Below, in pieces: positions 1,293-32,332 of a stretch of 64,000 bases of DNA. This DNA is from Selaginella moellendorffii (lineage: Eukaryota; Plantae; Lycopodiophyta): NCBI RefSeq assembly GCF_000143415.4, contig NW_003314297.1, positions 310,001 to 374,000 of the forward strand, written 5' to 3'. Each line of letters starts with the position of its first letter. Position 1 is the stretch's first letter. A program made the position numbers and the translations under genes. The notes beneath the pieces were generated by a model. It searched no databases. It worked only from the letters and a program-made list of their open reading frames with translations, and had not been told where the DNA came from.

Positions 1293-4200
1293 TTACTCTT
1301 CCATTGCACGAACTTCTCCCGCTTCACCACCGCCGGCAGCTTCCTTGACATCGATGGTCACGTCGTACTCCTGATCGCAACCGAGGTACGCGTCACACAT
1401 GAAGTAGAGCTTATAGTTCTTGACACCCGCCTCCTGCGGAGTGAACTCCAGCTTGCACTTGTTCCTCCGCTGCAGTGTCACCCTCTTGATCGCCAGCAGC
1501 ACATTGTTCGCAGTGTCGCCGAGAACTAGCCACCACCCCTCTTCCCTCGTCTTTGCAAGCCTGGGAGCCTCCACGATTCCAACCTCCTCGTTTCCTTCCA
1601 CTTCCCTCTCCAGCGTCACCTGAACAGCAACTGGCTCTCCCACGGTCGCCTCTGCCTCGTCCAGCACCTCGAAAGCCATATCGATGTTTGGAAACCGGTT
1701 GCACGTCCGAGCGATTGCTAGCAGCTGCGAGTCGTCCATTCCCAGCAGCTCCCGCCTTTCCCCGTCTTCCATCTCGAGCAGATCAAACACCGTCTCCACG
1801 TTCCTCTCCTTGCACTTCTTCGCTAGATCCTTGGTGAAGTGCGGGAGCTGCAGGAGCACCGAGTCTCGCTCCCACAGTCCCTGCGTTACCATCTGACTTA
1901 TCTCCATGGCTGCAAGCGCCGGGTTGAGCCAAGCGTTGCTGGCTATCACGTCGACCATGGCCTGGAGAAGCTTGATTGCCTGGAGCAGCACCTCACGCTG
2001 GTCCATAGCCAGATTACCCGGGACGGGATGCCTGGAGAAGTGAGCTTGCAACAGCGCGTTGGCCTTGAGGTGTGGATCCGAGTACTTCGGCTTGTCAACC
2101 GAGAAGCGCTGGTGGTTGACAAGCTTTCGGACGATATCCTCCTCGCCAGGTCTCACGGGAAGAGTAGCGTACTCGGACGCAGAAGCCAGGATCTCCAGCA
2201 AGCCTTTCATCTTCGTCTTTGCAGTCAGAGAGTTGCTGAAGAGCTCGATGGTAGTGTATCGTATGTAGTAGTAGGACGCGATCATTCCCAGGTTGAGTGG
2301 CGACAGCTCCATATCGTCCTCCACTGCGATACACTTGCTGGACTCCAGATCGTTGAGAGTCGACTCTACAAGCTCGGAGAGATGATCCGAAAGGTGCCGA
2401 TGGCTCACGCCCTGAAGGTTGTAGTAGTTTGGATTCTGAGTCAGCCTCCGGTACATGAGCGTCCATGTCAAGTAGTCCACTGCATCCTGCTTGTTCTCGA
2501 TGGTATGCACCACTATCTCTGCGTTGAGATGGTCGTGGATGTAGTGATCCAAGTGGCTCTCCACGGGGAAAGGCTCGTACAGGAACTTCTTGTAATACTC
2601 CTTACGAGGAGCATGGCATAAGATGACACACTTGCCAGAGCTGTCCACCAGAGGCCTGCTTGCACGCCCCATCATCTGCAGAAGATCCGTAATAGGATAG
2701 TCTGTGTGAGCGTTCTCTCTGCCGTCGTAGTACTGCGTCCCCATGACCACCAAGAGGTGCGCAGTAAGTGTCATCCCCCAGCACATAGAGCTGCTTGCAA
2801 CGCACACCTGAATGGCTCCGGCACTGAAGAGTTCCCCAACAATGTCTTGCTCGGTTGGAGACAAGCCTTCGTGGAGATATCCGACACCACCTTGCAGAGT
2901 CTCCTTGAGCTCGGGATCCCTTATCCGCTCCAGCAGGGGCTCCAAATCCTTCTCAGTGCACTGCAAGAAGCTGTTCCCGCCGGCCAGCGCGTAGAGAACG
3001 AGGTCGGAAGCAGTAGAGCGTGCATGCTTCCTCGTAGGAACAAAAACCAAGGCCGGTTTTCCACCCTTGGCATGCTGGAGAATGGCTGTGAAAGTTGGCT
3101 TCGTCATCGCTTGAACCCGAGCTTCAAAGTTCGTGATGTCGACTCCCTGAATGTGGATCTCGAGTGGAACTGGTCGCACAGCCGGAGAGAAGTTGAAAAG
3201 TCCGTGGGAGCTCGCTCCGATCCAGTCACCCAGGTCCTTGGCATTAGCCAGTGACGCCGACAGTGCGACTATCCGGATTTTGTCTCCAGCTTGCTTCGAG
3301 ATATAACGCATTCTAGAAACAATAACTTCCAGAACCGGACCACCTTCACCACCGATCAAGTGAAGCTCGTCTACCAGGAAGAGATTAACCTGTCCGATCT
3401 GCTTCCGCTGCTTCCACCTTCGTGACAACACATCCCACCTCTCTGGTGTGCTGATAATCACCTGGCCTCTGTCCAAAAGCTTCAAGTCCATAGCAGTTTC
3501 CCCTGTCAGCTGCACCACTTGAACTTTCAAGTCGGCGAACTTCTTTTCCCAGTCCTCAAACCGCTCCTTCGCAAGAGCTTCTTTCGGAGCAATGTAGACA
3601 CATTTACCACCTCCAGTGTCCGCGTTCTTTTGCAGCATGCGTAGCACGGCAAACTCTCCACAGATAGTTTTTCCGCTTCCCGTTGGCGCTGCAACAAGAA
3701 CGTTGTCATCTGTGTTGTAGAGAACCGTGAACACCTGTGTCTGAATAGGATTGAAGTGCTTGAACTGCTGGTAGAGAGCTTCAAAAGAAGGCTCCCGCAA
3801 AGCTGTGACCGGAAGAGGCTGCAGGTCCAGAAGCTCCGTTGGAGGTGGATACTTCTCGGGTAGAATCAAGTGCCTGAAAGAAACCGGAAGCACAGTCTCC
3901 GCTTTCAGCCACCTGTCCGAGATGACACGGATAAAATACTGCGGCGGCATCGGCTCAAAAATCGGAACTGTGAAGCTCAGGTTGTGGTCATCCTCCACGT
4001 ACTGCATCTTGAGTAGGAAATACTCGTGGTGAAGTATGGTCTCGCCATCATTATCCTCCACGATGACCCAAAATGGCTCCACAAAGCCATGAATCTTCTC
4101 GTCCCACTGAAAGTCCGGTGTGATGGTCAGGTCCACCTTGAGCACGGACCTTGTGATGGGTTGAACATGTGCGCTCAGCTCCAGCTTTGGAAACTGATGA

Positions 4201-7200
4201 ACGAACTTGTGGATCATCTTTCCAAGTTTCGGAATGCGGATAAGCTCTCCGATCTCCTGCGATGTCAGGTCATAATACCGCTCCCACGCATAATCCTTCT
4301 TCTCAATCTTGGTGAGAACGTCGATTGGAATGCCTTTGAACTGCCGCAACGGTGTCTGCGTGCTCCACATTCTCCTCTGGACCATTTTGCAAAGGTTGAG
4401 AGCCTTTTCAGCCAGTTGAGCCCAGCCCCGCTTCAAAACAATCTCAAACAATGCGCGCATCAACCGTCCGGCACTCTGCAAAACCATGCGCACGTTAGTT
4501 TGAAGCAAAGTGAAGTCCAATTCTCTTACCTGTGTTATGAACGTCATATCTGTGAAGAGAGAGAAGCCTTCAAGCTTCAGCTGCGATATGTAGGCTTGAA
4601 GCAGTACGTTGATCTTGGCGGACGGCTCCTCCAGACTCTCCTTGACAGGTACCGGAACTCTGTCCAATAACTTGGCGAGCTCAAGTTTTTCTTCCTCCCT
4701 GACCCCAACATTCTTGAACTCTTCGCTTTGTGAAAACAACCGGCACAGTTCGATCTCTCCCATCGTTGGCTTTAGGTGCTCATTGTACGTGGCCATTGTA
4801 CCGTGGCTGATATAGTAATGGCTAGCAATTCGGCCAAGGTCCGTCACCTGGAAATAGCCACTCTTTCGATCATATTTCACCAGATTGTTCTTGTCCAGAA
4901 TTGTTGCCGCAGTATGAATCTACAAAAAACAAGGTTAAGTAACGTTTTCAGATTTTCTATTACTAAAAGTGCTTACCAAGTCCGCCCTCCTCTCCTCCAA
5001 TGTTTCGTCAGTCTCGAGTACTTCTGGGTTGACGCCATAAAGCAGTGGGTTCCGCAGCATCCGGATATACAAGTACGTGTAGCCAAGCCACGCACAAGCC
5101 TCCCTCGCATTTTGCACGCTCCCAAGCACAATCTCGGCGTTGAGGTTGTCCGGCAGCTTGGAGATGAACTGACTTTCGATTGGAAGCTGCTGGTTCATCA
5201 GTGAAAGATAATACGAGAGCTCGCTGTGGCCAGTGATGATAATGCCTTCGCCAGTGCTATCAAACTGAGGCCGTCCAGCACGCCCAAGCATTTGCATCAC
5301 GTCCATGGGACTTAGCTCCGTCCAAGCACCTTTCTCGGGATTGTACACCTGAGTCCCTTTGATGATAACGGTATGGGCCGGAAGATTTACTCCCCAAGCT
5401 AGAGTCGCAGTCGAAACCAGCACCTGGATATGCCCGTCTGCGAAAAGTTCCTCCACAAGAGTTCTGTCGGCTCTCGCCATTCCAGCGTGGTGAATGGCAA
5501 AACCGTACGACAGAAGGCCTTTCAAGTCCGTGTTCTTCACGTTCTCCGCCTCGGTCCGCAGGATCTCACTACTAGCGCTGTCTCCCTTCAAGAATTTCCC
5601 TAGAGTATCATTTGTGAGCGCCGAGTCCCGTATAGCTTTTGCTGTCTTTGCCGTCTCCTTCCGAGAGTGCACAAAGATGAGAATCTGGCTCTTTCCCGCA
5701 ACAGCCAACACCTTCTCGTAGCAAATCTCGTTCATGAGCTGGAACCTTTGAAGCGGCTTCTTCACGGATATCCCAACGTACTGCTGACTCAAAGGGACCG
5801 GCCGGAAGCTGTTGTCGAAGTGAAACAGGCCCCTCGACTTGTCCACCCTCAGGAACATGGACACGTCCACGTAATTCGGCAGTGTCGCGGATAAGCCCAC
5901 CAGCCTGATCATATCGTGCGTTGTTTCAACCTGGCGAAGTGTTCGAGCCACAATACTCTCCAGAACTGGACCACGGCCATCGTGCAGCAGATGAATTTCG
6001 TCGATGATAACCAGCTTGACAAGTTGAGTGTAGGCCCTGTCGCCTGATTTTCGGGTGATGATATCCCACTTCTCCGGAGTCGCTACGATGATGTGCGTCT
6101 CTTCAATTTGCTGCCGAGAAAGCGACTGATCTCCAGTGAGCTCCTTCACTACAACACCATAGTCCGCCAGTCTCTTCTGAAGATTCCCAACCATCTCAGC
6201 GACCAAAGCCTTCATCGGAGCAATATAGACGATCTTTGTGTGACTGAGATCAAAAGTACCATCCGACTCCTGCTTCGAACCAAGCTCTTGAAGAATGGTG
6301 AGCAACGCAACGTTGGTCTTGCCAGCGCCTGTTGGTGCGCAAAGGAGAATATTTTCCTGAGTAAAGAGAGCCGTCTCGTAAACTCTGCTCTGGATGCGAT
6401 TCAACGTTTTCATCTCCTTGAATGCAGGCTGAGCCCAAGACGGCAAGTCCGATATCTTGACCAGCTCTTCACCTTCCTCCATTGGCTTCACCTTCATGGC
6501 AGGAACATGAACTTCCTCGTATCCTTTCTTCATCGTCCTGTAAGTGCCCTCCGGAAGCTCGCACTTTTTGTTGGCCATGAACAGGCCCTCCTTCTCAAAC
6601 GCCAGGTCTTTCAAGTCGAGAAATTGCCGCTGGCCTTGCCATCCTCCTTCCAAGACCACCTCCCTCTCCGGCCTTCGATCCTTTTCTCCGTCACCACCTT
6701 CTTCACGGAGTTTCCTCGCTTCCTCACGGATACTACGCTCCAGATTCTTTTGCCGCTCCTGCAAAGGCTCGATCTCGTTAGATAAGAAAGAAACAAGAAT
6801 ATGTAAATACATTACCTTCGCAGTCGCTCGAGTAGCGTGGAGCTGCTCCAGAATTCCCGACAAAACCGAACCTCCCTCCGTCATCTCATCTTCAATCCTT
6901 TTCCTCTCTTTATCGTCCTGCGATCGGGCCAGCCGAGTGCACCAGACAATCTTCCACCTGTTCTTGAGGAGCAACTTAATGAGCCCAAACTTGTCATAGT
7001 CCAGGAGCATGACGAGCCTGTTCTCCACGTCCCTCTCATCGCCCTCTCCAAGAGTTTGCAGAACCTCCTCGGCAAGCTTCTGGCTGTGCTGAGGCTCAAT
7101 CTCCTCGTACGCCTGAGTGATCTTCCGCTGGAGCCAGTACGCATCGATATCCTGGACGTTGAGTCCTTCGTCCGCCTCCTCCATGTCCTCGTCATCGAGG

Positions 7201-7955
7201 CCTCCCATTTGCATTGCTGATGCCTCGTTCGTCTCCTGACCATCTTCCTCGTTCTCACTCTCCTCCTGGACTTCGTCAACATCGCTCTCCTCTTCCTCGT
7301 CCTCCTCCTCGAACTCCACAGCCACGCCGATATCATCATCCAGAGCCTCCCCGGCAGCACCGCCAGCGTCACCACCATCGTAGAAGTCGACAATGATCTT
7401 CCCGATATTCACGAGCTGGTTGAATCGCTCCTGGCCAAGCTCGTTGAGCAGCTTCTCCAGCTCCTTCTTCTTGTCAGAGTCTTTCATCTTGTCATTCTTG
7501 AGCACCACTAGCACTTCGTCCGCCGCTCCACGCAGCACGTCCTGTGGCTGGTCCCCAAACTGCTGCTGGATCGTGCTGAGCAGTGCCTCGTATGCCGCCC
7601 GCGTCTCTTTCGTCTTTGGGCGATAAGTTCCCTCTTCTTGCAGCGACAAAACACTCTCCTCCTGTGACCCCTTTGATCGCTTGCTGGGCCGCCGCAGCAC
7701 ATCGTCCTGATTCTCCTTCTCCTTGCGCTTGCTGGCCTTGGCCTTCTTCTCGAGGAGCTCCGGCGGCTTGCCATGATCTACTCTATCCCCAAACCGCCGC
7801 GGATCTATCCTACCCCAGAGGCTCTCCGGCTCACCTGTGGGCTCGTGAGTGTCGCGCGGCCGTGTGTCGGTCGTCAGCACCAGACTGGAGTTGGCGCGGT
7901 ACTCGTACTGCTTGAACCGGGCGTGCGCCTCAGCACCGCCTCCCAAATGCGCCAT
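1293..7955 (-). CDS. BRR2: U5 snRNP 200 kDa DExH-box RNA helicase BRR2 (two Ski2-like helicase + Sec63 cassettes)
   Basis: ATG 7955 ([27 protein letters not shown]). Two helicase cassettes: [12 protein letters not shown] and [16 protein letters not shown] introns at 6759-6815, 4920-4976 and 4476-4529. Confidence 0.98.
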
Positions 7956-9007
7956 AGCTTCTGCCCTAGTTCCCAAAGCCCTAAATCGGATATTTGTGTG
8001 AATATTCTCTGGTGAGATGTTAAGTAGCTTAAATAAAGTTCTTGAGGAGGAGTTTTATCAGTGCTGGTTGACACCACTGTTAAAATCTAACCTCATCCTT
8101 GTGCCAATTAATCTTTGCTGTACACTAACAAGTTCACTATACATGCTCATTTTGGAAAATGTATGCCTGGGAAATCATGAACAATGCAAAAATTTATTAT
8201 TAACCAAGAAGAAATATTAAAACAAAATCCATAAAACAAACATGGAAAACTCAATTTGTTTCTCTTTTGTTTTAATCTCGAAAAAGTTCTCCAACCGTGC
8301 CAATGCTTACCTTTATTAAGCTTGTGCATATCAGGACTCATTTGGTCGTCAATAAGTTTATGTATTATATAATCAACCCTGTCCTCTTCAGGTTTGGCAT
8401 AGATTCTGCCACAAGCACACTCAATAGCCTTGCGTGGTAGTCTAAAATGTATAGCTGGTCTTCCACCTCCTAGCTCATCCTCCGTAGTTCCTAAGCCCTA
8501 GATCCTGATATATTATTCTATTCTGCCCTCAAATTTAAGGAATCTTATTATTTGAATCTAAAAGATAAATATTAGGATTTTAAATTGAGCAATATATAAT
8601 GATGCCAAATGGGTAGCACAGTAGCACTGTTGTTGCCTCTTACAGCAATGAAAGAAAAAAAGGAGGTGCAAAAGACGTGCATATTTATGGTACTGGGTAT
8701 TGGAGATACATTCAGCTGTAATCTTTTGTTCATATTATCATGGTTCAATTTAGGGTGGATGAATTGTCTATGTCAATGTGAATTCTATGTACCCAATGAT
8801 GGAACTCTCTTGTTGGAGCATCACAAGGAGAGCATCACGGTATGGTATAAGGTCAGCATCGCACCCGTTGGAATAGGACACGTCCGGATGTGTGCCAGGT
8901 GTCACTAGAATAAGAACCAACCTCCCTTCACATATATCCTCGTCAACAACTCTCATTCATTAACTGTGCGCTATGGCCGATACATAGTCTCTATTGTGTA
9001 GAACACT

Positions 9008-21647: not shown

Positions 21648-22241
21648 TTATTTGTTTCTCTTGAGCACTCTAGCTCGGCTATTGCTGAAGAAATTTTCAA
21701 CCTGAAACATCATGAAAATGATAAACAAAAAAGAAACATCAATAATCTTACCTGTTTCTTCGTGATGCCCAAGTCTTGTGCAAACTTCAGTTTTTGTTCT
21801 TTGCTTGGAAACCTGCAGGCATTCAAGCTTAGATCCTGGCAAGCCCAGAGATTGATAGAGCTTACGGGTTCTGCCGATAAGCATAGAGCCATGAAAGCAT
21901 AACTTCAACTGCCTGTTTGGGCAGATTTCCCCTCGTTCCCGAGAGCTCTCGTCTGCGTTTTAGAGTTGTTGCCGGGGATTCCTGGCAGCCTTTCTCGCCA
22001 GCACTGTTGTCTTCGTCTAGCTCGATCAGGAACTCTTGGAGATCATGCTCTTTGGACAGATTGCCCCTCGTGCCTTTCTCGCTGGCACTTTTGTCTTCGT
22101 CTAGCTTCATCAGGAACTCTTGGAGATCATCGTCTTCAAACTGGCCTGTTATCGGAAGCGTTCCTGGAAAACAGCACTGTGAGAAACTGGCACTTGGTGA
22201 GAAACTAGCAGAGAAAAATGGTGGTTACCCGAGCTTGCCAT
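21648..22241 (-). CDS. Small divergent TALE-class homeodomain protein (141 aa, 4 exons)
   Basis: Exons 22241-22229, 22163-21866, 21812-21752 and 21701-21648, with GT-AG introns of 65, 53 and 50 nt, join to a 426-nt ORF ending KRRRELSGTRGNLPKQAVEVMLSWLYAYRQNPFPSKEQKLKFAQDLGITKKQVENFFSNSRARVLKRNK*. Confidence 0.85.
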
Positions 22242-24719
22242 AGGTGATGATCAAGAGAGTAATGAAATATCACACATAATAGGGTGGGAATCGATTGCTA
22301 GCTCGATGGTTGCTCGAGCTCGGCTAAGAAAATGAACGGCCGCACCACCTGAGCAAGAAAATATCGCACCGAACCAATCCATTAATTAACACAATTTAAT
22401 TCAGACGGCCTATGCGGTAGAATCGAAACCCGTCAATCCATCCTTGGAAACATGACTCGCGCGCTTTGGTTTCGGTCGTGAGTGAATCAGTGACCACCAA
22501 GATGCTGCTTTGCTATGATCAATTTTAAAAAGATGCAATAAAAACCGATAGCTAGCTGTTTTGGAGCTAAGAAAATATTTAGTTCAAAGTGCCTTTCATA
22601 TACCACCATTAGGATGCTTGCAGTGGCCATGCATCCCCACCGCGATTGCTGTCGCCCCGCGAGCGTTCTTGGGGAAGTTTCTCGTCGGGACCGGCGTGGA
22701 ATAGGCGGAGAGGATGTTCGAGTCAGCATACTTGCGCAATTTCCACTGCCATCAGCGCCACTGGAATTTTGTGATCTCCGCCTCTTGATCCAGCATGGCG
22801 AATCGATCAATCCGTGAACAACTGCGAATGAGCATGCACGCATAGTTCAGTGGATGAACTTGATCCGCCAGAGGAAGCTCATGCCAATGCTTTTCCTTCC
22901 TCTTAAGATTATAGCTAACCCGCTTGGTTCTCGAGTTTGATTACAAATCTTGCAAATCAAAAGCATGAAGTACCTTCATCTTATTGCAGCTGGTTTAAAA
23001 GAGCCGATTTCTCTTCACTCGAAAACGAACAGCACCTGGCCACTGGAATCTCCTCCTCCACAAGTGTGACAGGTCTGGAAATCAGTTCCAGCCAGAAAAA
23101 CCACCACAAACTTGTGTTGAAGCTCTCTTTGACTCTGCTGGCTCGACCACCAAGCGCGTGTAAAAATATAGCAGCAAACGCTTTATGAATTTTGGTTCGC
23201 TTTAGGATTTTACCTCTGCATTTTGCATTTCTCATTTCCCGCTAAATTTTGAATTGCTTATGCATCCAGAGAAAAGAGACGAACCTCCAGCAATCGATCC
23301 TGCCTGCCTGCCCGTCCAACAAAACCAAGAAACAAAAACAAGCAAATTGAGGCTTGAAATCGCTCGTCGCGTAGCTCAGAATCATCCGCTTCGATCGCGT
23401 CCTCTCGTCGCGATTGGGGCAATGCACATACACGTCAGATTTGATGGGCATCAAAACGGCAAATTTTTTATTGTGTTTCTTTATGTTAAAATCTCTAATT
23501 AGGTTTTGTCTGAAATCAAACTCGAAAATTTAAAGAGTCACTAGAACTTTTGTGTTGAAATGTAGATTTTTTTTTATGTATGTGCTTTTTCAGTACAAGT
23601 TTGTACATCCTTGCACAAGTTTATATATCCTTGCACCATCCAAAGCTTACAGGTGTGGCCGGGTGCTCATGATCTTTAAGAGGAAATGTATGGTGGAAAA
23701 GCAATTATCACAGATCAAAATGTGCATCATATAAAATCATCATAAATAGCACCTGTCCATGTTCTATGAGCGCCCTGTTACATTGAGAAGTCTCTTAAGG
23801 TCAAGTTCTTCGACATCCAGAGACCATTCCAGCAGCTTTGTACATTTTCTTGCCTTGTTCTCTAACAATCCAAGCAGATAAACTCAAGAAGAAAAGAAGA
23901 AGGTTCCTTTTGGAGCTAGCTCCTGGAAAAGATCAATCGACTGGTGGAGGGGTGGTCGCGCCCAAGTTTTCATCCATCCTGAAAGTTCTTGCTTCAAAAA
24001 GAATGGACGCTAGCTTTAGAAATTCCCAGTGCTTAGTGCCGTGATCAAACCAACCAGATGCTCTTCAAATCCTAGGACGAAGGGTAAATAAAGTTCATGT
24101 GTACATATGGTGGCCGGATCATGATGAGCCCACAACTGCTACATCAGCTGCAGCACCCGGATCTTCCTCATCCCTGGACCATCTCTTATATGGAGTGGAG
24201 GCCACTGCGTTCTCTCCCCAGATCGAAAATATGACCTGTAGAAGCATAGCTCGGTTGAAAAATTGCTCTTCTCACCAACGATGGAAGAATACAATCACCT
24301 CAACTTCAAAGATGTGGCTATTGCCTAACACCACAAAGCTTTCCTGGATGCAATAAACAACAACACAATCATTCAGCAAGAGTTCATAGTGTATAGTGAT
24401 TAAATTTATTAAACCTTAGTTGTGTTAAAACTTAAAAACCTAGAACCTAATAGCATTAATAACAAATACTCAAATTGATGTATTGATTTTTAATGGCAAA
24501 CCAAAAACGAAAGATTATAAAGAAGTCAGTGGAAGAATTTTTTGACTTTTATCCATTCCTTTTAATATTTGTAATTTCAAAGCAATAAATTGAACTGTTT
24601 GAAATGTTTGAACACGAAAGGTGATGTCTTTGATAGACAAATAAATTGCAATTTAATTTTCTTTAATTAAGAAAGATTTGTGGTTTATAATATTCCATTA
24701 CATGCTTTCATTGTGTTGC

Positions 24720-25800
24720 AGAGGTTGATTGATTCATGAAGGAGTATTTTGATCTCTTTGAATTTGACTTATTGTTTGGGGCCAAGGTTGCCACATGTCA
24801 TTTGATTCCAACCGAGAATGCTCGTCCAATCAAGGTTCTTGTTTAAAATTGGTTACCCAAAGAAATCAAGATTTTATGTGCAAACATTAAGGAGATGTTA
24901 AAAAAGGGTGTTATTCAGAAGTTGCGAAGTCCTTGAGCATGTGAACCTTATCTTGTGACAAAGTCTGATAGAAGTATTTTATTTGGTCTCTGAATTGTGA
25001 GCGGGTGTTCATGGATTTCAAAGAGCTATTGACAACTCCTCCAGTTTTGGCATATCCTGATTACACTTGACCTTTTATTTTGCGCATGAATGCTTTTGAT
25101 ATTGGTCTTGGAGGTGTGTTAATACAAGAGAGCCCGAGTGTGCTTAGTTAGCGCCATCCTATTGCATATATAAGGCATACATTACAACTAGTGGAAGTGA
25201 ACTACTCTACGACAGAGAATGAGTGTTTAGTAGCAATTTAGGGTTTTAAGAAACTTCATACATATCTACATGGTTCTCGGACATTCCTTGAAGGTGATCA
25301 TGCTGCTGTTACTTCATTATTAAAGCGAAAGAACCTAATTGGTTGTATTGCTCAGTGGGCTTTGAAACTTCAGATATATGATTTTGATGTTGTTCATCGT
25401 CTAGGGAGTTCTATGGCTAATGCTAATACCCCTTTTCAAGCTCCTCCTCCTCCTCCTCCAATCTCTTCTTATGTTTTTGACAAGTTTGTTATTCTAGCAT
25501 TTATGGATTTTCTAGATGAGGATTCTATACCATCGGCAATTGCTGTACTTAACGTTCAATATCCACAAGGTGTAGAGCAAAATTTATCTTCTCTTGATAA
25601 GGTTTATAAGGCTCATTATTCCAAGAGGAGGGGATGATATGAGGTCCAAGTGTATAGGTATAATGTCGTATATTAATATTAGTGTAGTGGGATTGTAGTA
25701 GCCGTCAAATTAGTTTTAATCCAGACCACTTGCTCTTGTATATAAGCTAGGGATTTTAGGCTAATTGATATGCACATTTTCTATATTCCCTTTCCATATT
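24720..25800 (+). mobile_element. Internally deleted Ty3/gypsy element: RT start, RNase H, PPT and 3' LTR start
   Basis: EMLKKGVIQKLRSP*A...LVTKSD (RT start), then LTTPPVLAYPDYT*PFIL...GLGGVLIQ...HPIAY...NYSTTENECL...QWALKLQIYDFDVVHR (RNase H). PPT AAGAGGAGGGGA at 25623-25634 is followed by TG at 25635. Confidence 0.88.
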
Positions 25801-25912
25801 CCATGCAAATTATTAATATTTAAAATTTATTTATTTACATTCTTGTATCAAATATTTAAAACTTAATAAAAAATGAATATGTCTAGTAACAAGAATTTTT
25901 GATAATTGAAAA

Positions 25913-26560
25913 TTATAATTTACAAGTTAAACCACTTTGCCACGTTGGTATATTTGGAATTCCATCTTTAGAAATTAATAAATTACAATCCTTTTGAACA
26001 TGAAATATTGATAGCATAACACAATTATATTTTCTACAATAAGTTCCACTTGACCAGTAATTATTTATATCAAAGGCTCCATATAAAACAAGATTACCAT
26101 CTTCTTGCATTCTCAATGTACAATCAAAACTTTTCCCATATGTTTTTGTACTCCAAAAAGCATTAATGGCAATATAAAATACAATATTACAATCATATTG
26201 CATTATTATTGTAAAACCTTTTGAATAATCAATTAATTCTTACCCAATTTTTAATGTTGCCAATGGCATGTTCTTATACCCACTTATAAGTCTAGTATTC
26301 AATGGGTTACAGAAGTAAGAAACTTTTGCTAATAGTGTAGTACTAGATGGAGATTTTGGGATATAATCTCTTATACTATATAATAAACCAAATACTCCAA
26401 CCTCTGGATCAAAAATAACTGTTAAGAAATATGCTGCAATATTGTTTATAATAATTGGGATAATTTCTCTACTAGCTCTTGTAAGTACATCCACTACTCT
26501 ATCATTTTCAACTAATTGTTTGCCTTGAGGATCAACACCACAATCTATAAAACTGAAAAT
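25913..26560 (-). pseudogene. Bulb-type (GNA) mannose-binding lectin domain gene with one in-frame stop
   Basis: Three QxDxNxVxY-type motifs: QYDCNIVFY, QEDGNLVLY, QKDCNLLIS. ORF 26240-26494 is in the same frame, separated only by TAA in ATLKIG*ELIDYSKGFTIIMQYDCN. The 5' end is lost in a gap. Confidence 0.8.
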
Positions 26561-26570
26561 ATAAAAATAT

Positions 26571-26670
26571 NNNNNNNNNNNNNNNNNNNNNNNNNNNNNN
26601 NNNNNNNNNNNNNNNNNNNNNNNNNNNNNNNNNNNNNNNNNNNNNNNNNNNNNNNNNNNNNNNNNNNNNN
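26571..26670. other. Assembly gap
   Basis: Run of 100 N. Confidence 1.
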
Positions 26671-26738
26671 ATATATATATATATATATATTAAAAATATA
26701 TATTAATTTTTAATATAAAAAAAATATTATATATTTAT

Positions 26739-26816
<78 letters not shown>
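26671..26816. repeat. (TA)n microsatellite
   Basis: Directly visible TA runs next to the gap. Confidence 0.97.
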
Positions 26817-26819
<3 letters not shown>

Positions 26820-28273
26820 TAGTGTGTTTCATGTTTAAACAAATGTCAAGAATATATGGTTATACTTTTTATATATAAAGTATAACTATATTTCATATAT
26901 CTCTTCATTTGCCAACTCCATTTGTCAAATACTAGAATTTAAATAGTTGCTATTCCTTAAACTATTTCTAGAAACTATGATGGCCTGGGATATGAAGGAA
27001 CATAATGAGGAGACACTTGTGGATTTGTAAGTAGTGCAATTTATTTTTGATCCCTTTGTATAAAGCGTTTCACATGCACAATTTCTGGAGGATTGGCATG
27101 TTGAATATCATGCCAAATTTCATAAACTTATAGTCAAACTTACTATAACACTTGATATAGCCCCTTTTATTGAGCAAAGAGCCTTTCAGATCCAAGGGAT
27201 CTGGAGAGGGAATAGTAAAGCAAGGAAACACAATAAGTAGTCATGGAGAGATATAAGTGATAAAAGCAGAAATAGAAGTACATAAATAAATTGGAATAAA
27301 AATAAAAGAAATGAAAAGATTTAAGATTCCTCCTCAACTTTCCATAACTGCCTTTGATGCTTATAGATTAAACATGCAAAAAAGACAAGTATGGTAAACA
27401 AGCACCTTTTCTAATTCATTTGCCATTCATTTAAGTTTCCCATACTGAGGCATCACTTCCAAGTTTCATATAATTAGGTCACAAGGATCTGTACATACAA
27501 GCAAATATTTCATCATCTTGCCAAAATACCCATTAGCAAAATTGAAAGTCTCAGGAAAAAAAATTATAAACTATATACACGGTATCTGTATATACTATAT
27601 AGATACAATGTTTGTATACCTCAGTAATATGAAATTATCAAGTTCTATAACTTTTTTGCCAACAAATGATATGTGCTCTTGAACCACCTTGAGCAAAGTT
27701 TTTCCATCACTTTGCCTTGACACGAGTCTGAGCACCGGCATAAAGTAGGACTCATTACAAAGCTAGTAACTAGGCTCCCAAACTTCCCATGGTGACTACA
27801 TAATACAATTGGATGATATGGTGAAGATTTGTGAATTTCCTCTATATTTGTAGGGTGATATGGCATTGTGATTTACAAACTTTGCAACATCTAGTATCTA
27901 GTTGGCTTTGACAAGCTCTTTCCCTTGTCAATGGGGGTGAGAATGTGGCATACTTTCGAGGATGCATGAAGAACTTGCTAGCTCAAGTGAATCCAAATAT
28001 GTATGAGTCTATCAAGTTGGGCCTGTTTTATTTGTTTGTAGCCCATATGCAGCATTCATTCATGGATATTGTCTACAAAACCCTGACAATACCAATGTGA
28101 TTGCACAAAGTGTACAGGAAATAGAGGTCTTAGCACCACATCCACATAGTATGCATTTCTTTCCTCATTTCATGGCCATCCATATTATTTTGGGAGATAA
28201 TAATATGATAATGATATAATGGGATATTATTTGGGATATTATTATAAATACTAGAGATATTATTAATTATTTC

Positions 28274-28710
28274 TATGAGGTTCAGATGTATAGCTATGAT
28301 GGCATATACTATTATTAGCGTAACTCCTATGTATAAACTAGGGTTTTTTGCTCTTATTGTGTTTTATGTTTTTGCATCATCTAGATTTCTCTTGTTCTTA
28401 TAGCTTTTTCATTTCTTCTCTTTTTTTTTCTTCTTTTCATTTATTTTTATGGTAGAGTAGTGTACTCCTCCTTTGCAGCAACCTCCTTCTCCTCTTACTT
28501 GGTGTAATTACTTGAAGCTATGTGGCTGCAATTGAATAATTAAACTTAGTTGATAGTAGTGTTTGTAACAATCTTCCAGATGATATGTACCATTAGTTTG
28601 ATAATTTTAAAATGATTGCCACCTATCATTCTTGGGATGATACCTAGCATCTAACGGGAGTTTCTCACATATCTTTAAATGATAGCATTGCAATGGTACA
28701 ATAGTTTAAG
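28274..28710 (+). mobile_element. Second LTR-like copy followed by possible decayed gag
   Basis: TATGAGGTTCAGATGTATAGCTATGATGGCATATACTATTATTAGCGTA resembles TATGAGGTCCAAGTGTATAGGTATAATGTCGTATATTAATATTAGTGTA at ~25638. Downstream FDNFKMIATYHSWDD is gag-like. Confidence 0.55.
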
Positions 28711-30013
28711 CATAATCAATTGTGCAAATTGAAGTCTTCTCTCAGGTGTCTTCAAGTGCATATTTAGATATACTAACAATAGTGATAATGCCTTCTAACA
28801 ATTGCATCATCTTTGTTAAAGGCCATTTAAGATGCTTATATAATTTGGCGTTTGCTTTCAGAGCCTCTTCTTTGGTATGAAACTAAATATGTTAGAGCGA
28901 ATCAAGTTAGGCATATTGTGGCCAGCTCTTTGTCAAGATCTTGTGAGACTTATGCATACACTTACCCTAAACAATAGTCTTTGATTGGCATAATGTTATA
29001 AGATATCATCTCTCCCACTTAGCTATATGTGCTTCAATTCCACTTCTTATGAGAGATACTTATATTCTAATGGAGATTAATACTATTATTGCCTATGTTA
29101 GGGTGAAGATGTAGTCATAGCTGTGATGTTTATTGCTGGGGGAGATGGTCCAAAGTTGAGTTGAGCTCACGAGTTGAGCTCAATTACAAGTCAACTCAAA
29201 TCAACATGGTCAACTAAAATTTCTACAAAGGAAATTTAAATTGAATAAATGAAGGTTCTAGCAAACTTTAAAATATTTAATATATAAATATCTAAGTAAA
29301 TATTTAAGATAAAAGTTTCTATAAGATTGAATTGTTTAGAAAAGACAAAGTTCACGAGAACTTACCTTTTGGAAAGCTATATTATTTTATTATGACTATT
29401 GTTACAATTATCATATTTTGATTTGACTACTTAATATTTTGAATACTTTTACAATTGTAGATACTATTTCTTCATTCAAAAGATTTTTTAAGGTTTTTGA
29501 GAAAATGGGAAGCAAAGAAAATATAAGATCTGTAAGTAAGAGTTGTAGTGCAAAGGAATGTAAGAATGTTAATTTTGTTTCACTACCACAACCTCTATAT
29601 TACACTCTTGGTTTTTATTACCCATTTAAGAATGTAGAGACCACTATCACGATTGATAAAAATGCTTCTATTACTTCTAAAACAATAATCTAAAGCAAGA
29701 GAAATGAAGAAATGAATAGCATGGCAGAAAACACCAAGAAATCTACTCTATAAAACTTTTTATGACATTTGTAATTTATGTTTTAATTCATATCAAAAGC
29801 TCTGTTGCCTGCCTATATCGCAATCCTCTCATATGATAAGACCAAGGTATGTTTTTGCAGTGAATCCTCATTAAAATTTTTCAGGAGTTGTTTGTGAATA
29901 ATAATTAAAAAATCAAAATTTTTCAAAAGACTCAAAAGTAATATCACATCAAAGAATCAATTTTATCTACATTTCCAAGACTGAAAGGCAATCTCACATG
30001 AGAGAATAGTAGT

Positions 30014-30108
30014 GTGCCAATGTGCTTTGCCACTATAATATAATTTATATTTCCTTGCAAGCGTGCCAATGTGCTTTGCCACTATAATATAATTTATATT
30101 TCCTTGCA
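30014..30108 (+). repeat. Perfect 46-bp tandem duplication (49-bp period)
   Basis: GTGCCAATGTGCTTTGCCACTATAATATAATTTATATTTCCTTGCA at 30014 and 30063. Confidence 0.95.
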
Positions 30109-30683
30109 GTCTACTTCCCTAGATATTTGGCATGCGTAGAAAAGAATATATATATATAGCAAAGTAGGATTTCATTATAATGATAGAGCATATGTATACA
30201 CGATAATCTAAAATTCTAGAAGCTCTTATGTTTACAAGCAAGTTATGATTATGAAGCCCCATTTCCAAGACTACCAAGGGCTAGATACGGTGGATGTGAA
30301 TGGTGACAATAATGAAGAATTTCACTTATATTACATGAAAGCCATGCTTGTGTTTACAAATAGAATTATCTAACTTATTTTTATATATATACACACAATA
30401 TGAGATGGTATAATTTATATATATAGATAATTTAAAATTTATATAAGCTCTTTATTTGAAATTCAATGGTTATAATTTATACTTATAAAAAGACTTAGAC
30501 TCCTTATTTAGTTTTTTCATATTTGTTTTAAAATTAAATCTCATCCATTATATTTTTGATAAATAGACAAAATTGAATATAAAACAGGTTTATATTAATA
30601 TTAGGTAAAGGTTATTAATATTAACCTATAGAAAACCTGGGTGTAACGAATATTTCTAGAATATTCAAGATACTTATTCAATA

Positions 30684-31352
30684 TCATAACTTGATATCAG
30701 AGTCACAGTTCTTTCTAAGCACGCTCTCCCTGGTGAAGGTGGCCAGGGGCCTCACATCCAAATCGCACCTCTCCACAAACTTCAGCCTGGGCGTCTTGAG
30801 CTTCCCGATCTGGAACCGGATCTTCACTCGAATCACCACCCGGAACGAGATCCTCTGCTGCGCCAGCGCCCTCAGCAAGCTGGAGGCCACCGCCCGCGGC
30901 AGCACCACGCCGTCCGACTCCACGTCCTTCTCCACGCTCGCCAAGGCTGAGCGCTTGGCCTGCGAGAACCCCGCGAGCACAGCCTCGCCCACCCGGATGT
31001 CGTCGAAGAAGACGTTGAGGTGGATGTCATCGAAGAGGATCTTGAGGCGCGTGTTTGGATTGGCCACGTCGAGGATCAAGCCCAGGTCCGCCTTGAGGAG
31101 CGCCGTGGAGAAGAAGGTGGTGGGCGAGGCTATGACGGCCCCGAGGTGCCGGACGGCGATGTCGCGGATGTGGACCTTGGGCGATTTGGGGTGGAAGGCG
31201 ATGTAAGTGACGAGCAGCAGGCACGCGAAGAGCAAGCCGAGGATGAGGAGAATGGTGACGATCCATGTCAGGATCGCGATGGCGGGATTGGGGTGGCACA
31301 GGTACCTGGAGGCGAAGTTCTTGTGGGCGTCGTGCTCGTCTTGTTGTTCCAT
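30684..31352 (-). CDS. NDR1/HIN1-like (LEA_2 domain) protein, intronless
   Basis: N-terminal TM helix, then PKSPKVHI, NPN motif (VANPNTRLKILFD) and a C-terminal C.....C pair. Likely ATG at 31352 (MEQQDE). Confidence 0.9.
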   Translation of the reverse strand: MEQQDEHDAHKNFASRYLCHPNPAIAILTWIVTILLILGLLFACLLLVTYIAFHPKSPKVHIRDIAVRHLGAVIASPTTFFSTALLKADLGLILDVANPNTRLKILFDDIHLNVFFDDIRVGEAVLAGFSQAKRSALASVEKDVESDGVVLPRAVASSLLRALAQQRISFRVVIRVKIRFQIGKLKTPRLKFVERCDLDVRPLATFTRESVLRKNCDSDIKL

Positions 31353-31770
31353 TTGCTCCTTTGATCTGTCAGTGTCTGTGCTCACTCCTGTTTGATCCAA
31401 GTGATGTGTTTCGCGGAGAAGGTGCCAAGGCATCAGTGTGTTTGACGCATTGTGAGCTTTAAGCTGTTTGCTTTGATCTCAATCGAAAGCATAACTTTAC
31501 ACTCGGCAACAAGAGAGGAAAGCAAAATGTTACAAACTCTCTAGTTTTTTAATTTGCTTGTTAGATCTTTGTTTTCCTGTAGAAGCATAACACTTCGTGT
31601 TTCTCAAGAAACTTTTTCTCGAGCATTGTGTTTGAGTTTTAAACTCCAGGATTGCCAGAGAAACAAATTCTTTCATTTGTGTTCTCTCTCCATACTTGTC
31701 TTTCTTACGCTCCAGAGATCGTCTAGATCGTAGATGATATTTCTACTAGATGATCGATGGGAGGTAAAAC

Positions 31771-32332
31771 TCACAGCTTGGAGGTAAACAACGATGGCCG
31801 CGAGAAGTACTTGGTGTGATGCCCACTCGCCACAATCTCGCCATTCTTCCCAGCTCTCCTCACCTCGGCCGATAGCATCACAACGTTCTTCCCCTTCTTC
31901 AAAACTTTAGACTCGATCTCGAGCTCATCCTGGGAGAGAAAAGGAAACCAGTTTAAGAGTTCTTGGATCCTTGCTCTTGACTCCAAACTCACATCGATCC
32001 TGGCGGCCGAGACGTAAGTGATGCTGAGGTCGATCGAGACGCCCGTGTTAGTGCCACCCACTGTGAGCACCGCCATGGTGCTCACGCAGTCGATGAGCGT
32101 GGCAATGGCTCCACCGTGGAGCGTTCCATATCCATTCTACAAACACAGTTATACCGGAGAGGGGATCACGGATCTTACTACATACGGCGAGATTGGCGGG
32201 CACGCGAATGGCGCAGAGGATCCGGCCTGCGTCGGCGGCCTTGATCTCCACTCGCTCGAGGACACGCGCATCAAAGCCACCGGGAGAGCTCCTGAGCGCC
32301 TCCAAGACTGCACGGCCTGCTGCCAACGCCAT
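31771..32332 (-). CDS. Hotdog-fold acyl-CoA thioesterase (ACOT13/PaaI-like), peroxisomal, 3 exons
   Basis: Spliced ...ANLA|NGYGTLHGGAIATLIDCVST...GVSIDLSITYVSAARID|DELEIESKVL...; ends SKL* (PTS1). Confidence 0.92.

Follow-up and report, generated by a model that had tools for sequence, protein, structure and literature searches.

The homeobox gene on the minus strand of the window at 21648-22241 is probably an annotated, small and highly diverged stand-alone TALE homeodomain gene of BELL descent, from which the POX domain has been lost. The window is the whole stretch of DNA analysed here, 64,000 nucleotides of the Selaginella moellendorffii genome (contig NW_003314297.1, positions 310,001 to 374,000 of the forward strand). 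Across green plants, both meristem function and the switch from the haploid to the diploid phase are under the control of KNOX/BELL heterodimers, and land plants are held to have no non-KNOX TALE class other than BELL (PMC6219170). If functional, a BELL-derived gene devoid of the domain for heterodimerisation would depart from this pattern and would merit a test in a lycophyte. The immediate value of the gene is modest, as it is annotated, belongs to an already catalogued kind, has no expression support and shows weak allelic constraint. What is new here is that BELL-type intron positions are demonstrated directly in an orphan TALE, that the alleles of the two haplotypes are paired, and that the 5′ ends of their annotated models are seen to disagree.

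Gene structure and public record

The exon-intron structure was read directly from the window sequence, and the gene was found to consist of four exons and three GT-AG introns, all on the minus strand. Exon 1 (22241-22229, 13 nt) carries the ATG start and covers the codons of MASS plus one base of G5. This exon was predicted ab initio only, and the 5′ end of the model is uncertain. Intron 1 (22228-22164, 65 nt, GT..AG) has the same sequence in the other haplotype. Exon 2 (22163-21866, 298 nt) encodes an acidic N-terminal region with a repeat, a KRRR run and positions 1-24 of the homeodomain, comprising helix 1 and the TALE loop. Intron 2 (21865-21813, 53 nt, GT..AG) falls behind the second base of codon P24, the BELL-type position 24(2/3), and is followed by exon 3 (21812-21752, 61 nt), which encodes homeodomain positions 24-44 with the PFP loop and helix 2. 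Intron 3 (21751-21702, 50 nt, GT..AG) lies between Q44 and V45, at position 44/45. Exon 4 (21701-21648, 54 nt) encodes homeodomain positions 45-60, which include the recognition helix, and the TAA stop; it too is the same in the other haplotype.

The exon lengths (13 + 298 + 61 + 54) add up to 426 nt, equal to 141 codons and a stop. When the exons were searched one by one against proteins, their translations agreed letter for letter with the public 141-aa protein EFJ20825.1 (SELMODRAFT_417865; UniProt D8S3W4, "Homeobox domain-containing protein"), which is on record from one genomic contig only. An earlier reading made from the sequence alone had proposed a four-exon, uninterrupted 141-aa ORF with canonical introns of 50-65 nt, and both the exon arithmetic and the identity with EFJ20825.1 bear this out. 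The same reading called the gene hidden; since the public record is identical, and its model dates from the genome release, this description was wrong. The gene is real, correctly delineated and already annotated, and genes of its kind have been published for S. moellendorffii. The locus tag itself was not mentioned in the literature searched.

Both haplotypes are present in the assembly of S. moellendorffii. A search with the homeodomain region recovered a second copy of the gene, SELMODRAFT_407891 (P0159, 236 aa), on scaffold GL377572.1 (locus L001). This locus is collinear with the window from 38548 to 21417 at 96-98.7% identity and has the same neighbours, apart from an insertion of 5.5 kb in the window that L001 lacks. 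The collinearity fits SELMODRAFT_417865 and SELMODRAFT_407891 being an allelic pair.

The homeodomain and the N-terminal region

The protein is a TALE homeodomain by profile, loop and predicted fold. Pfam Homeobox_KN matched residues 96-135 of the 141-aa protein at 46.8 bits, the cut-off being 24, the Homeodomain profile gave 33.1 bits, and exon 3 by itself (20 aa) reached 16.3 bits on Homeobox_KN. The C-terminal 66 residues could be aligned free of gaps with the solved homeodomains of Meis2, TGIF1, PKNOX1 and PBX/Exd (E 1e-12 to 1e-10). As there are no gaps against Meis2, TGIF1, PBX1 and 26 other TALE homeodomains, the three-residue TALE loop is present; the stretch concerned reads W19-L-Y-A-Y23-R-Q-N-P24-F-P. 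In the AlphaFold2 model, helices are placed at residues 87-99, 108-118 and 122-139, with a pLDDT of ~96 over 85-135. The protein ends 5 residues past helix 3.

Helix 3 reads V45-E-N-F48-F49-S50-N51-S52-R53-A54-R55. The DNA-contact residues N51, R53 and R55 are kept, the core residue W48 is replaced by F, and S52 and A54 stand in place of the usual A52 and R/V/K54. The changes W48>F and I50>S, with N51 and R53 kept, had been pointed out before and are exactly as described when read from the translation of exon 4. Two adjacent phenylalanines at positions 48-49 are rare, being found in about 4 of the ~190 other homeodomains in the match set; F48, and also S50, are seen in other TALE homeodomains of that set. 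An insertion of five residues behind the KRRR run leaves the N-terminal arm with R5 only, and positions 2-3 are not basic. A further feature reported earlier, PFP in place of PYP, holds for the allele in the window, but the other haplotype has the canonical PYP, so that PFP is allele-specific.

The N-terminal 80 residues are badly ordered in the AlphaFold2 model, with the exception of one helix at 16-30. Inside exon 2 there is an in-frame tandem duplication of 84 nt (21988-22136, minus strand), the copies of which (22136-22072 and 22052-21988) are 89% identical over 65 nt. The duplicated motif is DLQEFL..LDED.SA.EKG, and the first copy is followed by a partial echo of the homeodomain start, GTRGNL(S/P)K. 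The duplication was found in both haplotypes. That the repeat might be a hidden domain, such as ELK or POX, was considered and rejected, as there is no Pfam support for it at E<=1.

Intron positions and relation to BELL genes

The two introns within the homeodomain, at 24(2/3) and 44/45, agree in position and in phase with the introns of a POX-carrying BELL gene (protein P0081, locus L002). With the splice points marked by slashes, the junction at position 24 is CC/GT...AG/G here and CC/GT...AG/T in the BELL locus, and that at position 44/45 is CAG/GT...AG/GTT here, matching CAG/GT...AG/GT in the BELL locus. The sequence-only reading had named these as BELL-type intron positions, and direct comparison with the BELL gene confirms it in both position and phase. 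In a KNOX gene (protein P0030, locus L003), the homeodomain is interrupted by one intron only, which follows PYPS, and positions 24(2/3) and 44/45 are free of introns. The 24(2/3) intron is specific to plant BELL genes, while the one at 44/45 is ancestral and widely shared (PMC6219170). PMC2775110 says the same of the latter, which also occurs there in PBC, TGIF and IRO genes and in several non-TALE classes. Being common to many classes, the 44/45 intron is weakly diagnostic.

By pairwise identity, the homeodomain does not group with BELL. Measured against one BELL and one KNOX representative, it is 37% identical (48.9 bits) to BELL P0081 and 43% identical to KNOX P0030, and it reaches 45-51% with TGIF, MEIS and fungal TALEs; judged by such pairwise identities it is no nearer to BELL than to KNOX or TGIF-like proteins. 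Its identity to any other TALE is only 37-57%. Because both BELL homeodomain introns have been retained, descent of the gene from the BELL (non-KNOX) lineage is supported, and the POX (SKY+BELL) domain would since have been lost.

Searches for relatives gave nothing closer. In word-indexed searches of protein collections with exon 2 and the homeodomain region, no orthologue or close relative was recovered, only the gene itself and its allele. An exhaustive search of representative proteins likewise returned no close relative, and its top scores belonged to multi-homeodomain proteins of unrelated eukaryotes, summed over their repeats. The ESM Atlas yielded generic Homeobox_KN clusters only, with scores below 0.9. 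Many of the top-scoring metagenomic and protist relatives were themselves seen to carry 3-8 tandem TALE homeodomains per chain, one example being a protein of 622 aa with 8 matched stretches.

These data also bear on the suspicion that the model is a chance chain of ORFs or an artefact of gene prediction, which appears extremely unlikely. The exons are short, the first of them just 13 nt, and no transcript was found. Against this, the Homeobox_KN score is accumulated over three exons whose canonical GT-AG junctions keep the reading frame, the introns match those of a real BELL gene in position and phase, the predicted fold is confident, and the same structure recurs in the second haplotype. 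A chance ORF chain is effectively refuted by the homeodomain score together with the intron congruence.

Absence of a partner domain and the 5′ end of the gene

Canonical plant TALE proteins were expected in the earlier reading to carry SKY/BELL or KNOX/ELK dimerisation domains, and these had been described as absent from the gene. In Pfam searches at E<=1, no match to POX (PF07526), KNOX1, KNOX2 or ELK was obtained in the protein, in its first 80 residues, in the N-terminal extension of the other allele or in the upstream ORFs of the minus strand. When the 797-aa BELL protein (P0081) was compared by tblastn with the whole 64-kb window, no match was obtained either, and the two methods agree with the earlier description. 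An upstream exon encoding POX/BELL, with which this would be an ordinary BELL gene, was sought as well; there is none in the window, and the gene is not an ordinary BELL gene. It does not belong to the KNOX class, having no KNOX1, KNOX2 or ELK domain and no KNOX-type intron placement. The next genes upstream are unrelated, an LEA_2 gene at 30684-31433 and a 4HBT thioesterase gene at 31771-32085.

The GenBank gene models of the two alleles differ at their 5′ ends, and both ends are ab initio choices only. The model of the other allele (P0159) has ~96 extra N-terminal residues from upstream exons, which are spliced into the same exon-2 acceptor and have no Pfam match. In the window, a TGA (where L001 has TGG), a deletion of 12 nt and an insertion of 2 nt interrupt the corresponding upstream exons (22596-22843, minus strand). 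Translation might also begin at 22110, where there is an ATG in frame.

The disagreement of the models raises the question whether the four exons are the 3′ part of a longer gene, with 5′ exons upstream that possibly encode a dimerisation domain. This reading we hold to be very unlikely. It draws on the longer P0159 model, which uses the same acceptor, and on the 13-nt first exon being backed by ab initio prediction only. However, the added residues match no Pfam domain, the TGA and the 12-nt and 2-nt indels of the window allele mean that coding is not conserved even between the haplotypes, no POX or KNOX similarity is seen in the upstream ORFs or in the window, and the upstream neighbours are unrelated to TALE genes. 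A stand-alone homeodomain gene of BELL descent remains the preferred reading.

Expression

Transcription of the gene was examined in public sequence data. No read (0) fell on the gene in three RNA-seq runs labelled S. moellendorffii, ~12% of each run being read, where the species is given by label alone and no gametophyte tissue is stated. In 19 RNA-like assemblies of S. moellendorffii, none of the gene's words was present. The sole run contig bearing the gene (X1) is unspliced and DNA-like. Over window positions 21702-22900 it is exact to this haplotype in the gene body and carries the SNPs and indels of the other haplotype upstream of ~22418. X1 looks like genomic DNA, and its composition resembles a haplotype switch in the de Bruijn assembly of a heterozygous plant; being unspliced and showing such a switch, it is uninformative on expression. 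The end of X1 coincides exactly with the boundary of intron 3 and exon 4, probably by coincidence. Spliced transcripts across the three introns, proposed earlier as the check on the gene, were not found in this weak test of three partly read runs and 19 assemblies.

Divergence between the alleles

Comparison of the alleles over the whole model gave 7 nonsynonymous and 3 synonymous changes, together with one in-frame indel of 3 nt. Omega between them is 0.61, an estimate that rejects neither 1 nor 0.3-0.5 but does reject 0.1 (p=0.006). The coding sequence has diverged by 3.1%, the 5′ flank by 2.1% and the introns by 2.4%. Exon 4, which encodes helix 3, as well as exon 1 and intron 1 are identical between the alleles, and both haplotypes retain the ORF and all six splice sites. 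Three of the replacements (window/other allele: Y/N23, F/Y25 and L/Q32) fall on conserved positions of the homeodomain.

Simulations were used to judge what these figures mean. An unconstrained ORF at 3% divergence is still open 62% of the time, and the intactness of both alleles is therefore uninformative. Neutral drift down to 37-57% identity, modelled with substitutions only, leaves the frame open in ~1-3% of simulations. As the frame, the six splice sites and the homeodomain signature have been kept in spite of the divergence from other TALEs, we infer a long past period of purifying selection; constraint at present appears to be relaxed or is uncertain. A dN/dS near 1 or disrupted alleles had been named earlier as the marks of a recent pseudogene. 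Of these, the first cannot be told apart from what is observed, as an omega of 0.61 is indistinguishable from 1, and the second was not seen, both ORFs being intact.

It is possible, though we regard it as doubtful, that the gene is a recently inactivated relic, that is, a BELL-derived homeodomain gene which was functional for long and is now drifting neutrally and unexpressed. The indistinguishability of omega from 1, a coding divergence no lower than that of introns and flanks, and the replacements at conserved positions 23, 25 and 32 are what would be expected of such a relic. The lack of RNA reads and transcript contigs points the same way, as does the location of the gene, which borders on rearranged, repeat-rich sequence, with the 5.5-kb insertion upstream and haplotype collinearity lost ~230 nt past the stop. 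The survival of the ORF would also be expected, at the 62% given above. On the other hand, both alleles keep the ORF, the splice sites and an identical exon 4, and their sole indel is a multiple of three. An omega of 0.3-0.5 is compatible with the data and leaves moderate constraint possible, and the RNA test is a weak one in which no gametophyte tissue is stated.

Comparison with known TALE proteins

The gene of BELL descent proposed here shares with plant BELL genes the three-residue TALE loop, the introns at 24(2/3) and 44/45 in the same phase, and a small, non-basic residue at position 54 (A here, V in BELL). It differs from them in the absence of POX, in a homeodomain only 37% identical to that of P0081 that has F48, S50 and S52 where BELL has W48, I50 and A52, and in its length of 141 aa, as against ~500-800 aa.

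The closest description in the literature is that of Mukherjee et al. 2009, who report five or six unclassified Selaginella TALE genes without a KNOX/BEL co-domain (PMC2775110). As presented there, these "uncharacterized TALE" genes are from the same species, do not cluster confidently with KNOX or BEL and have no recognisable KNOX/BEL co-domain; intron positions, alleles or an N-terminal duplication are not discussed for them in that main text. Membership of SELMODRAFT_417865 in this group is the best explanation, and it is a candidate matched by description, not by gene list. Taken together, the TALEs of Selaginella comprise 5 KNOX, 2 BEL and 5-6 orphan genes. Later phylogenies left out sequences without co-domains (PMC5637896), and owing to this exclusion the Selaginella orphan TALEs appear to have gone unstudied since 2009.

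Animal TGIF and the short fungal and protist TALEs provide the best homeodomain matches. The resemblance of helix 1 to TGIF and fungal TALEs, suggested earlier, is upheld by the shared RGNLPK...WLY and by these matches of 45-51% identity. Like the Selaginella protein, these TALEs are without MEINOX- or PBC-type domains, and TGIF also has the 44/45 intron (PMC2775110). They belong to other kingdoms, however, and their helix 3 has the canonical W48, I50 and R54, unlike the gene here. Similarity of this kind extends to numerous lineages that are unrelated to one another, and so reflects general TALE conservation and not orthology.

The Class-B and Mam-B non-KNOX TALEs of chlorophytes (Joo et al. 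2018, PMC6219170) are likewise fast-diverging and without a recognisable PBL/BELL-type domain. They are green-algal proteins, for which KNOX binding through regions outside the homeodomain was shown by yeast two-hybrid. The sequence-only reading had suggested a partner-independent activator. Partner independence is not implied by the missing domain, as chlorophyte non-KNOX TALEs with no recognisable PBL still bind KNOX (PMC6219170).

The alternative proposed in the same reading was a microProtein competing with the KNOX/BELL system. Classical microProteins keep the interaction domain and have lost the DNA-binding domain. The label does not suit the Selaginella protein, in which this architecture is reversed, the homeodomain being kept and the interaction domain missing. 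KNATM microProteins are likewise small TALE-family derivatives able, in principle, to interfere with KNOX/BELL; they keep MEINOX and lack the homeodomain (PMC4617109), the reverse of the situation here. With the homeodomain kept and the interaction domain missing, the protein, if it competes at all, would do so for sites on DNA rather than for partners.

Possible function

We infer that the protein binds DNA, and the same holds for any present function, the chances of which are roughly even. If it acts today, it would do so as a homeodomain-only DNA-binding protein with an atypical recognition helix (F48, S50, S52 and A54) and a reduced N-terminal arm. At the base-contacting positions 50 and 54, and in the arm, the protein departs from KNOX as well as from BELL. 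Its target preference would, through the altered helix 3 and arm, differ from that of KNOX/BELL dimers. The canonical POX-MEINOX contact with KNOX would not be usable, which would leave the duplicated acidic/hydrophobic N-terminal motif, modelled as partly helical, as the one surface that might serve in activation or in contact with a partner. The unusual residues, namely W48F, H23Y/N and the lost basic residues 2-3, could reflect decay rather than a new specificity.

A bolder proposal, which we consider unlikely, is that the gene represents a third type of TALE factor among land plants, one that is functional in Selaginella and perhaps in lycophytes at large. Such a factor would be BELL-derived and homeodomain-only, with a re-tooled recognition helix (S50 and others), and would evolve fast through a role in the gametophyte, gamete or zygote. 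It might reach new targets without KNOX, or might modulate KNOX/BELL through a cryptic N-terminal contact, by analogy with the algal Class-B proteins.

Surroundings in the window

Capture of the gene by a transposon was considered and rejected, as there are no flanking terminal inverted repeats and no second copy in the window. The insertion that sets the window apart from the other haplotype is an AT-rich stretch of ~5.5 kb at 24710-30274, in which letters near 26570-26680 are given as N; the other haplotype does not have it, the corresponding junction being at L001 8240-8257. Because it is missing from the collinear haplotype, a transposon probably inserted here. The sequences that this insertion parts in the window are spanned in L001 by an annotated gene model of 315 aa.

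Downstream of the gene the region is repeat-rich and rearranged. Collinearity between the haplotypes ends ~230 nt past the stop, and between window 21108-16849 and L001 12810-17557 only patches of 79-92% identity are found, one of them inverted. Farther along the minus strand, at 1293-7976, two ORFs of 1195 and 1013 aa encode a BRR2/SNRNP200-type spliceosomal helicase that is almost intronless, with Helicase_PWI, BRR2 plug, DEAD, wHTH and Sec63 domains.
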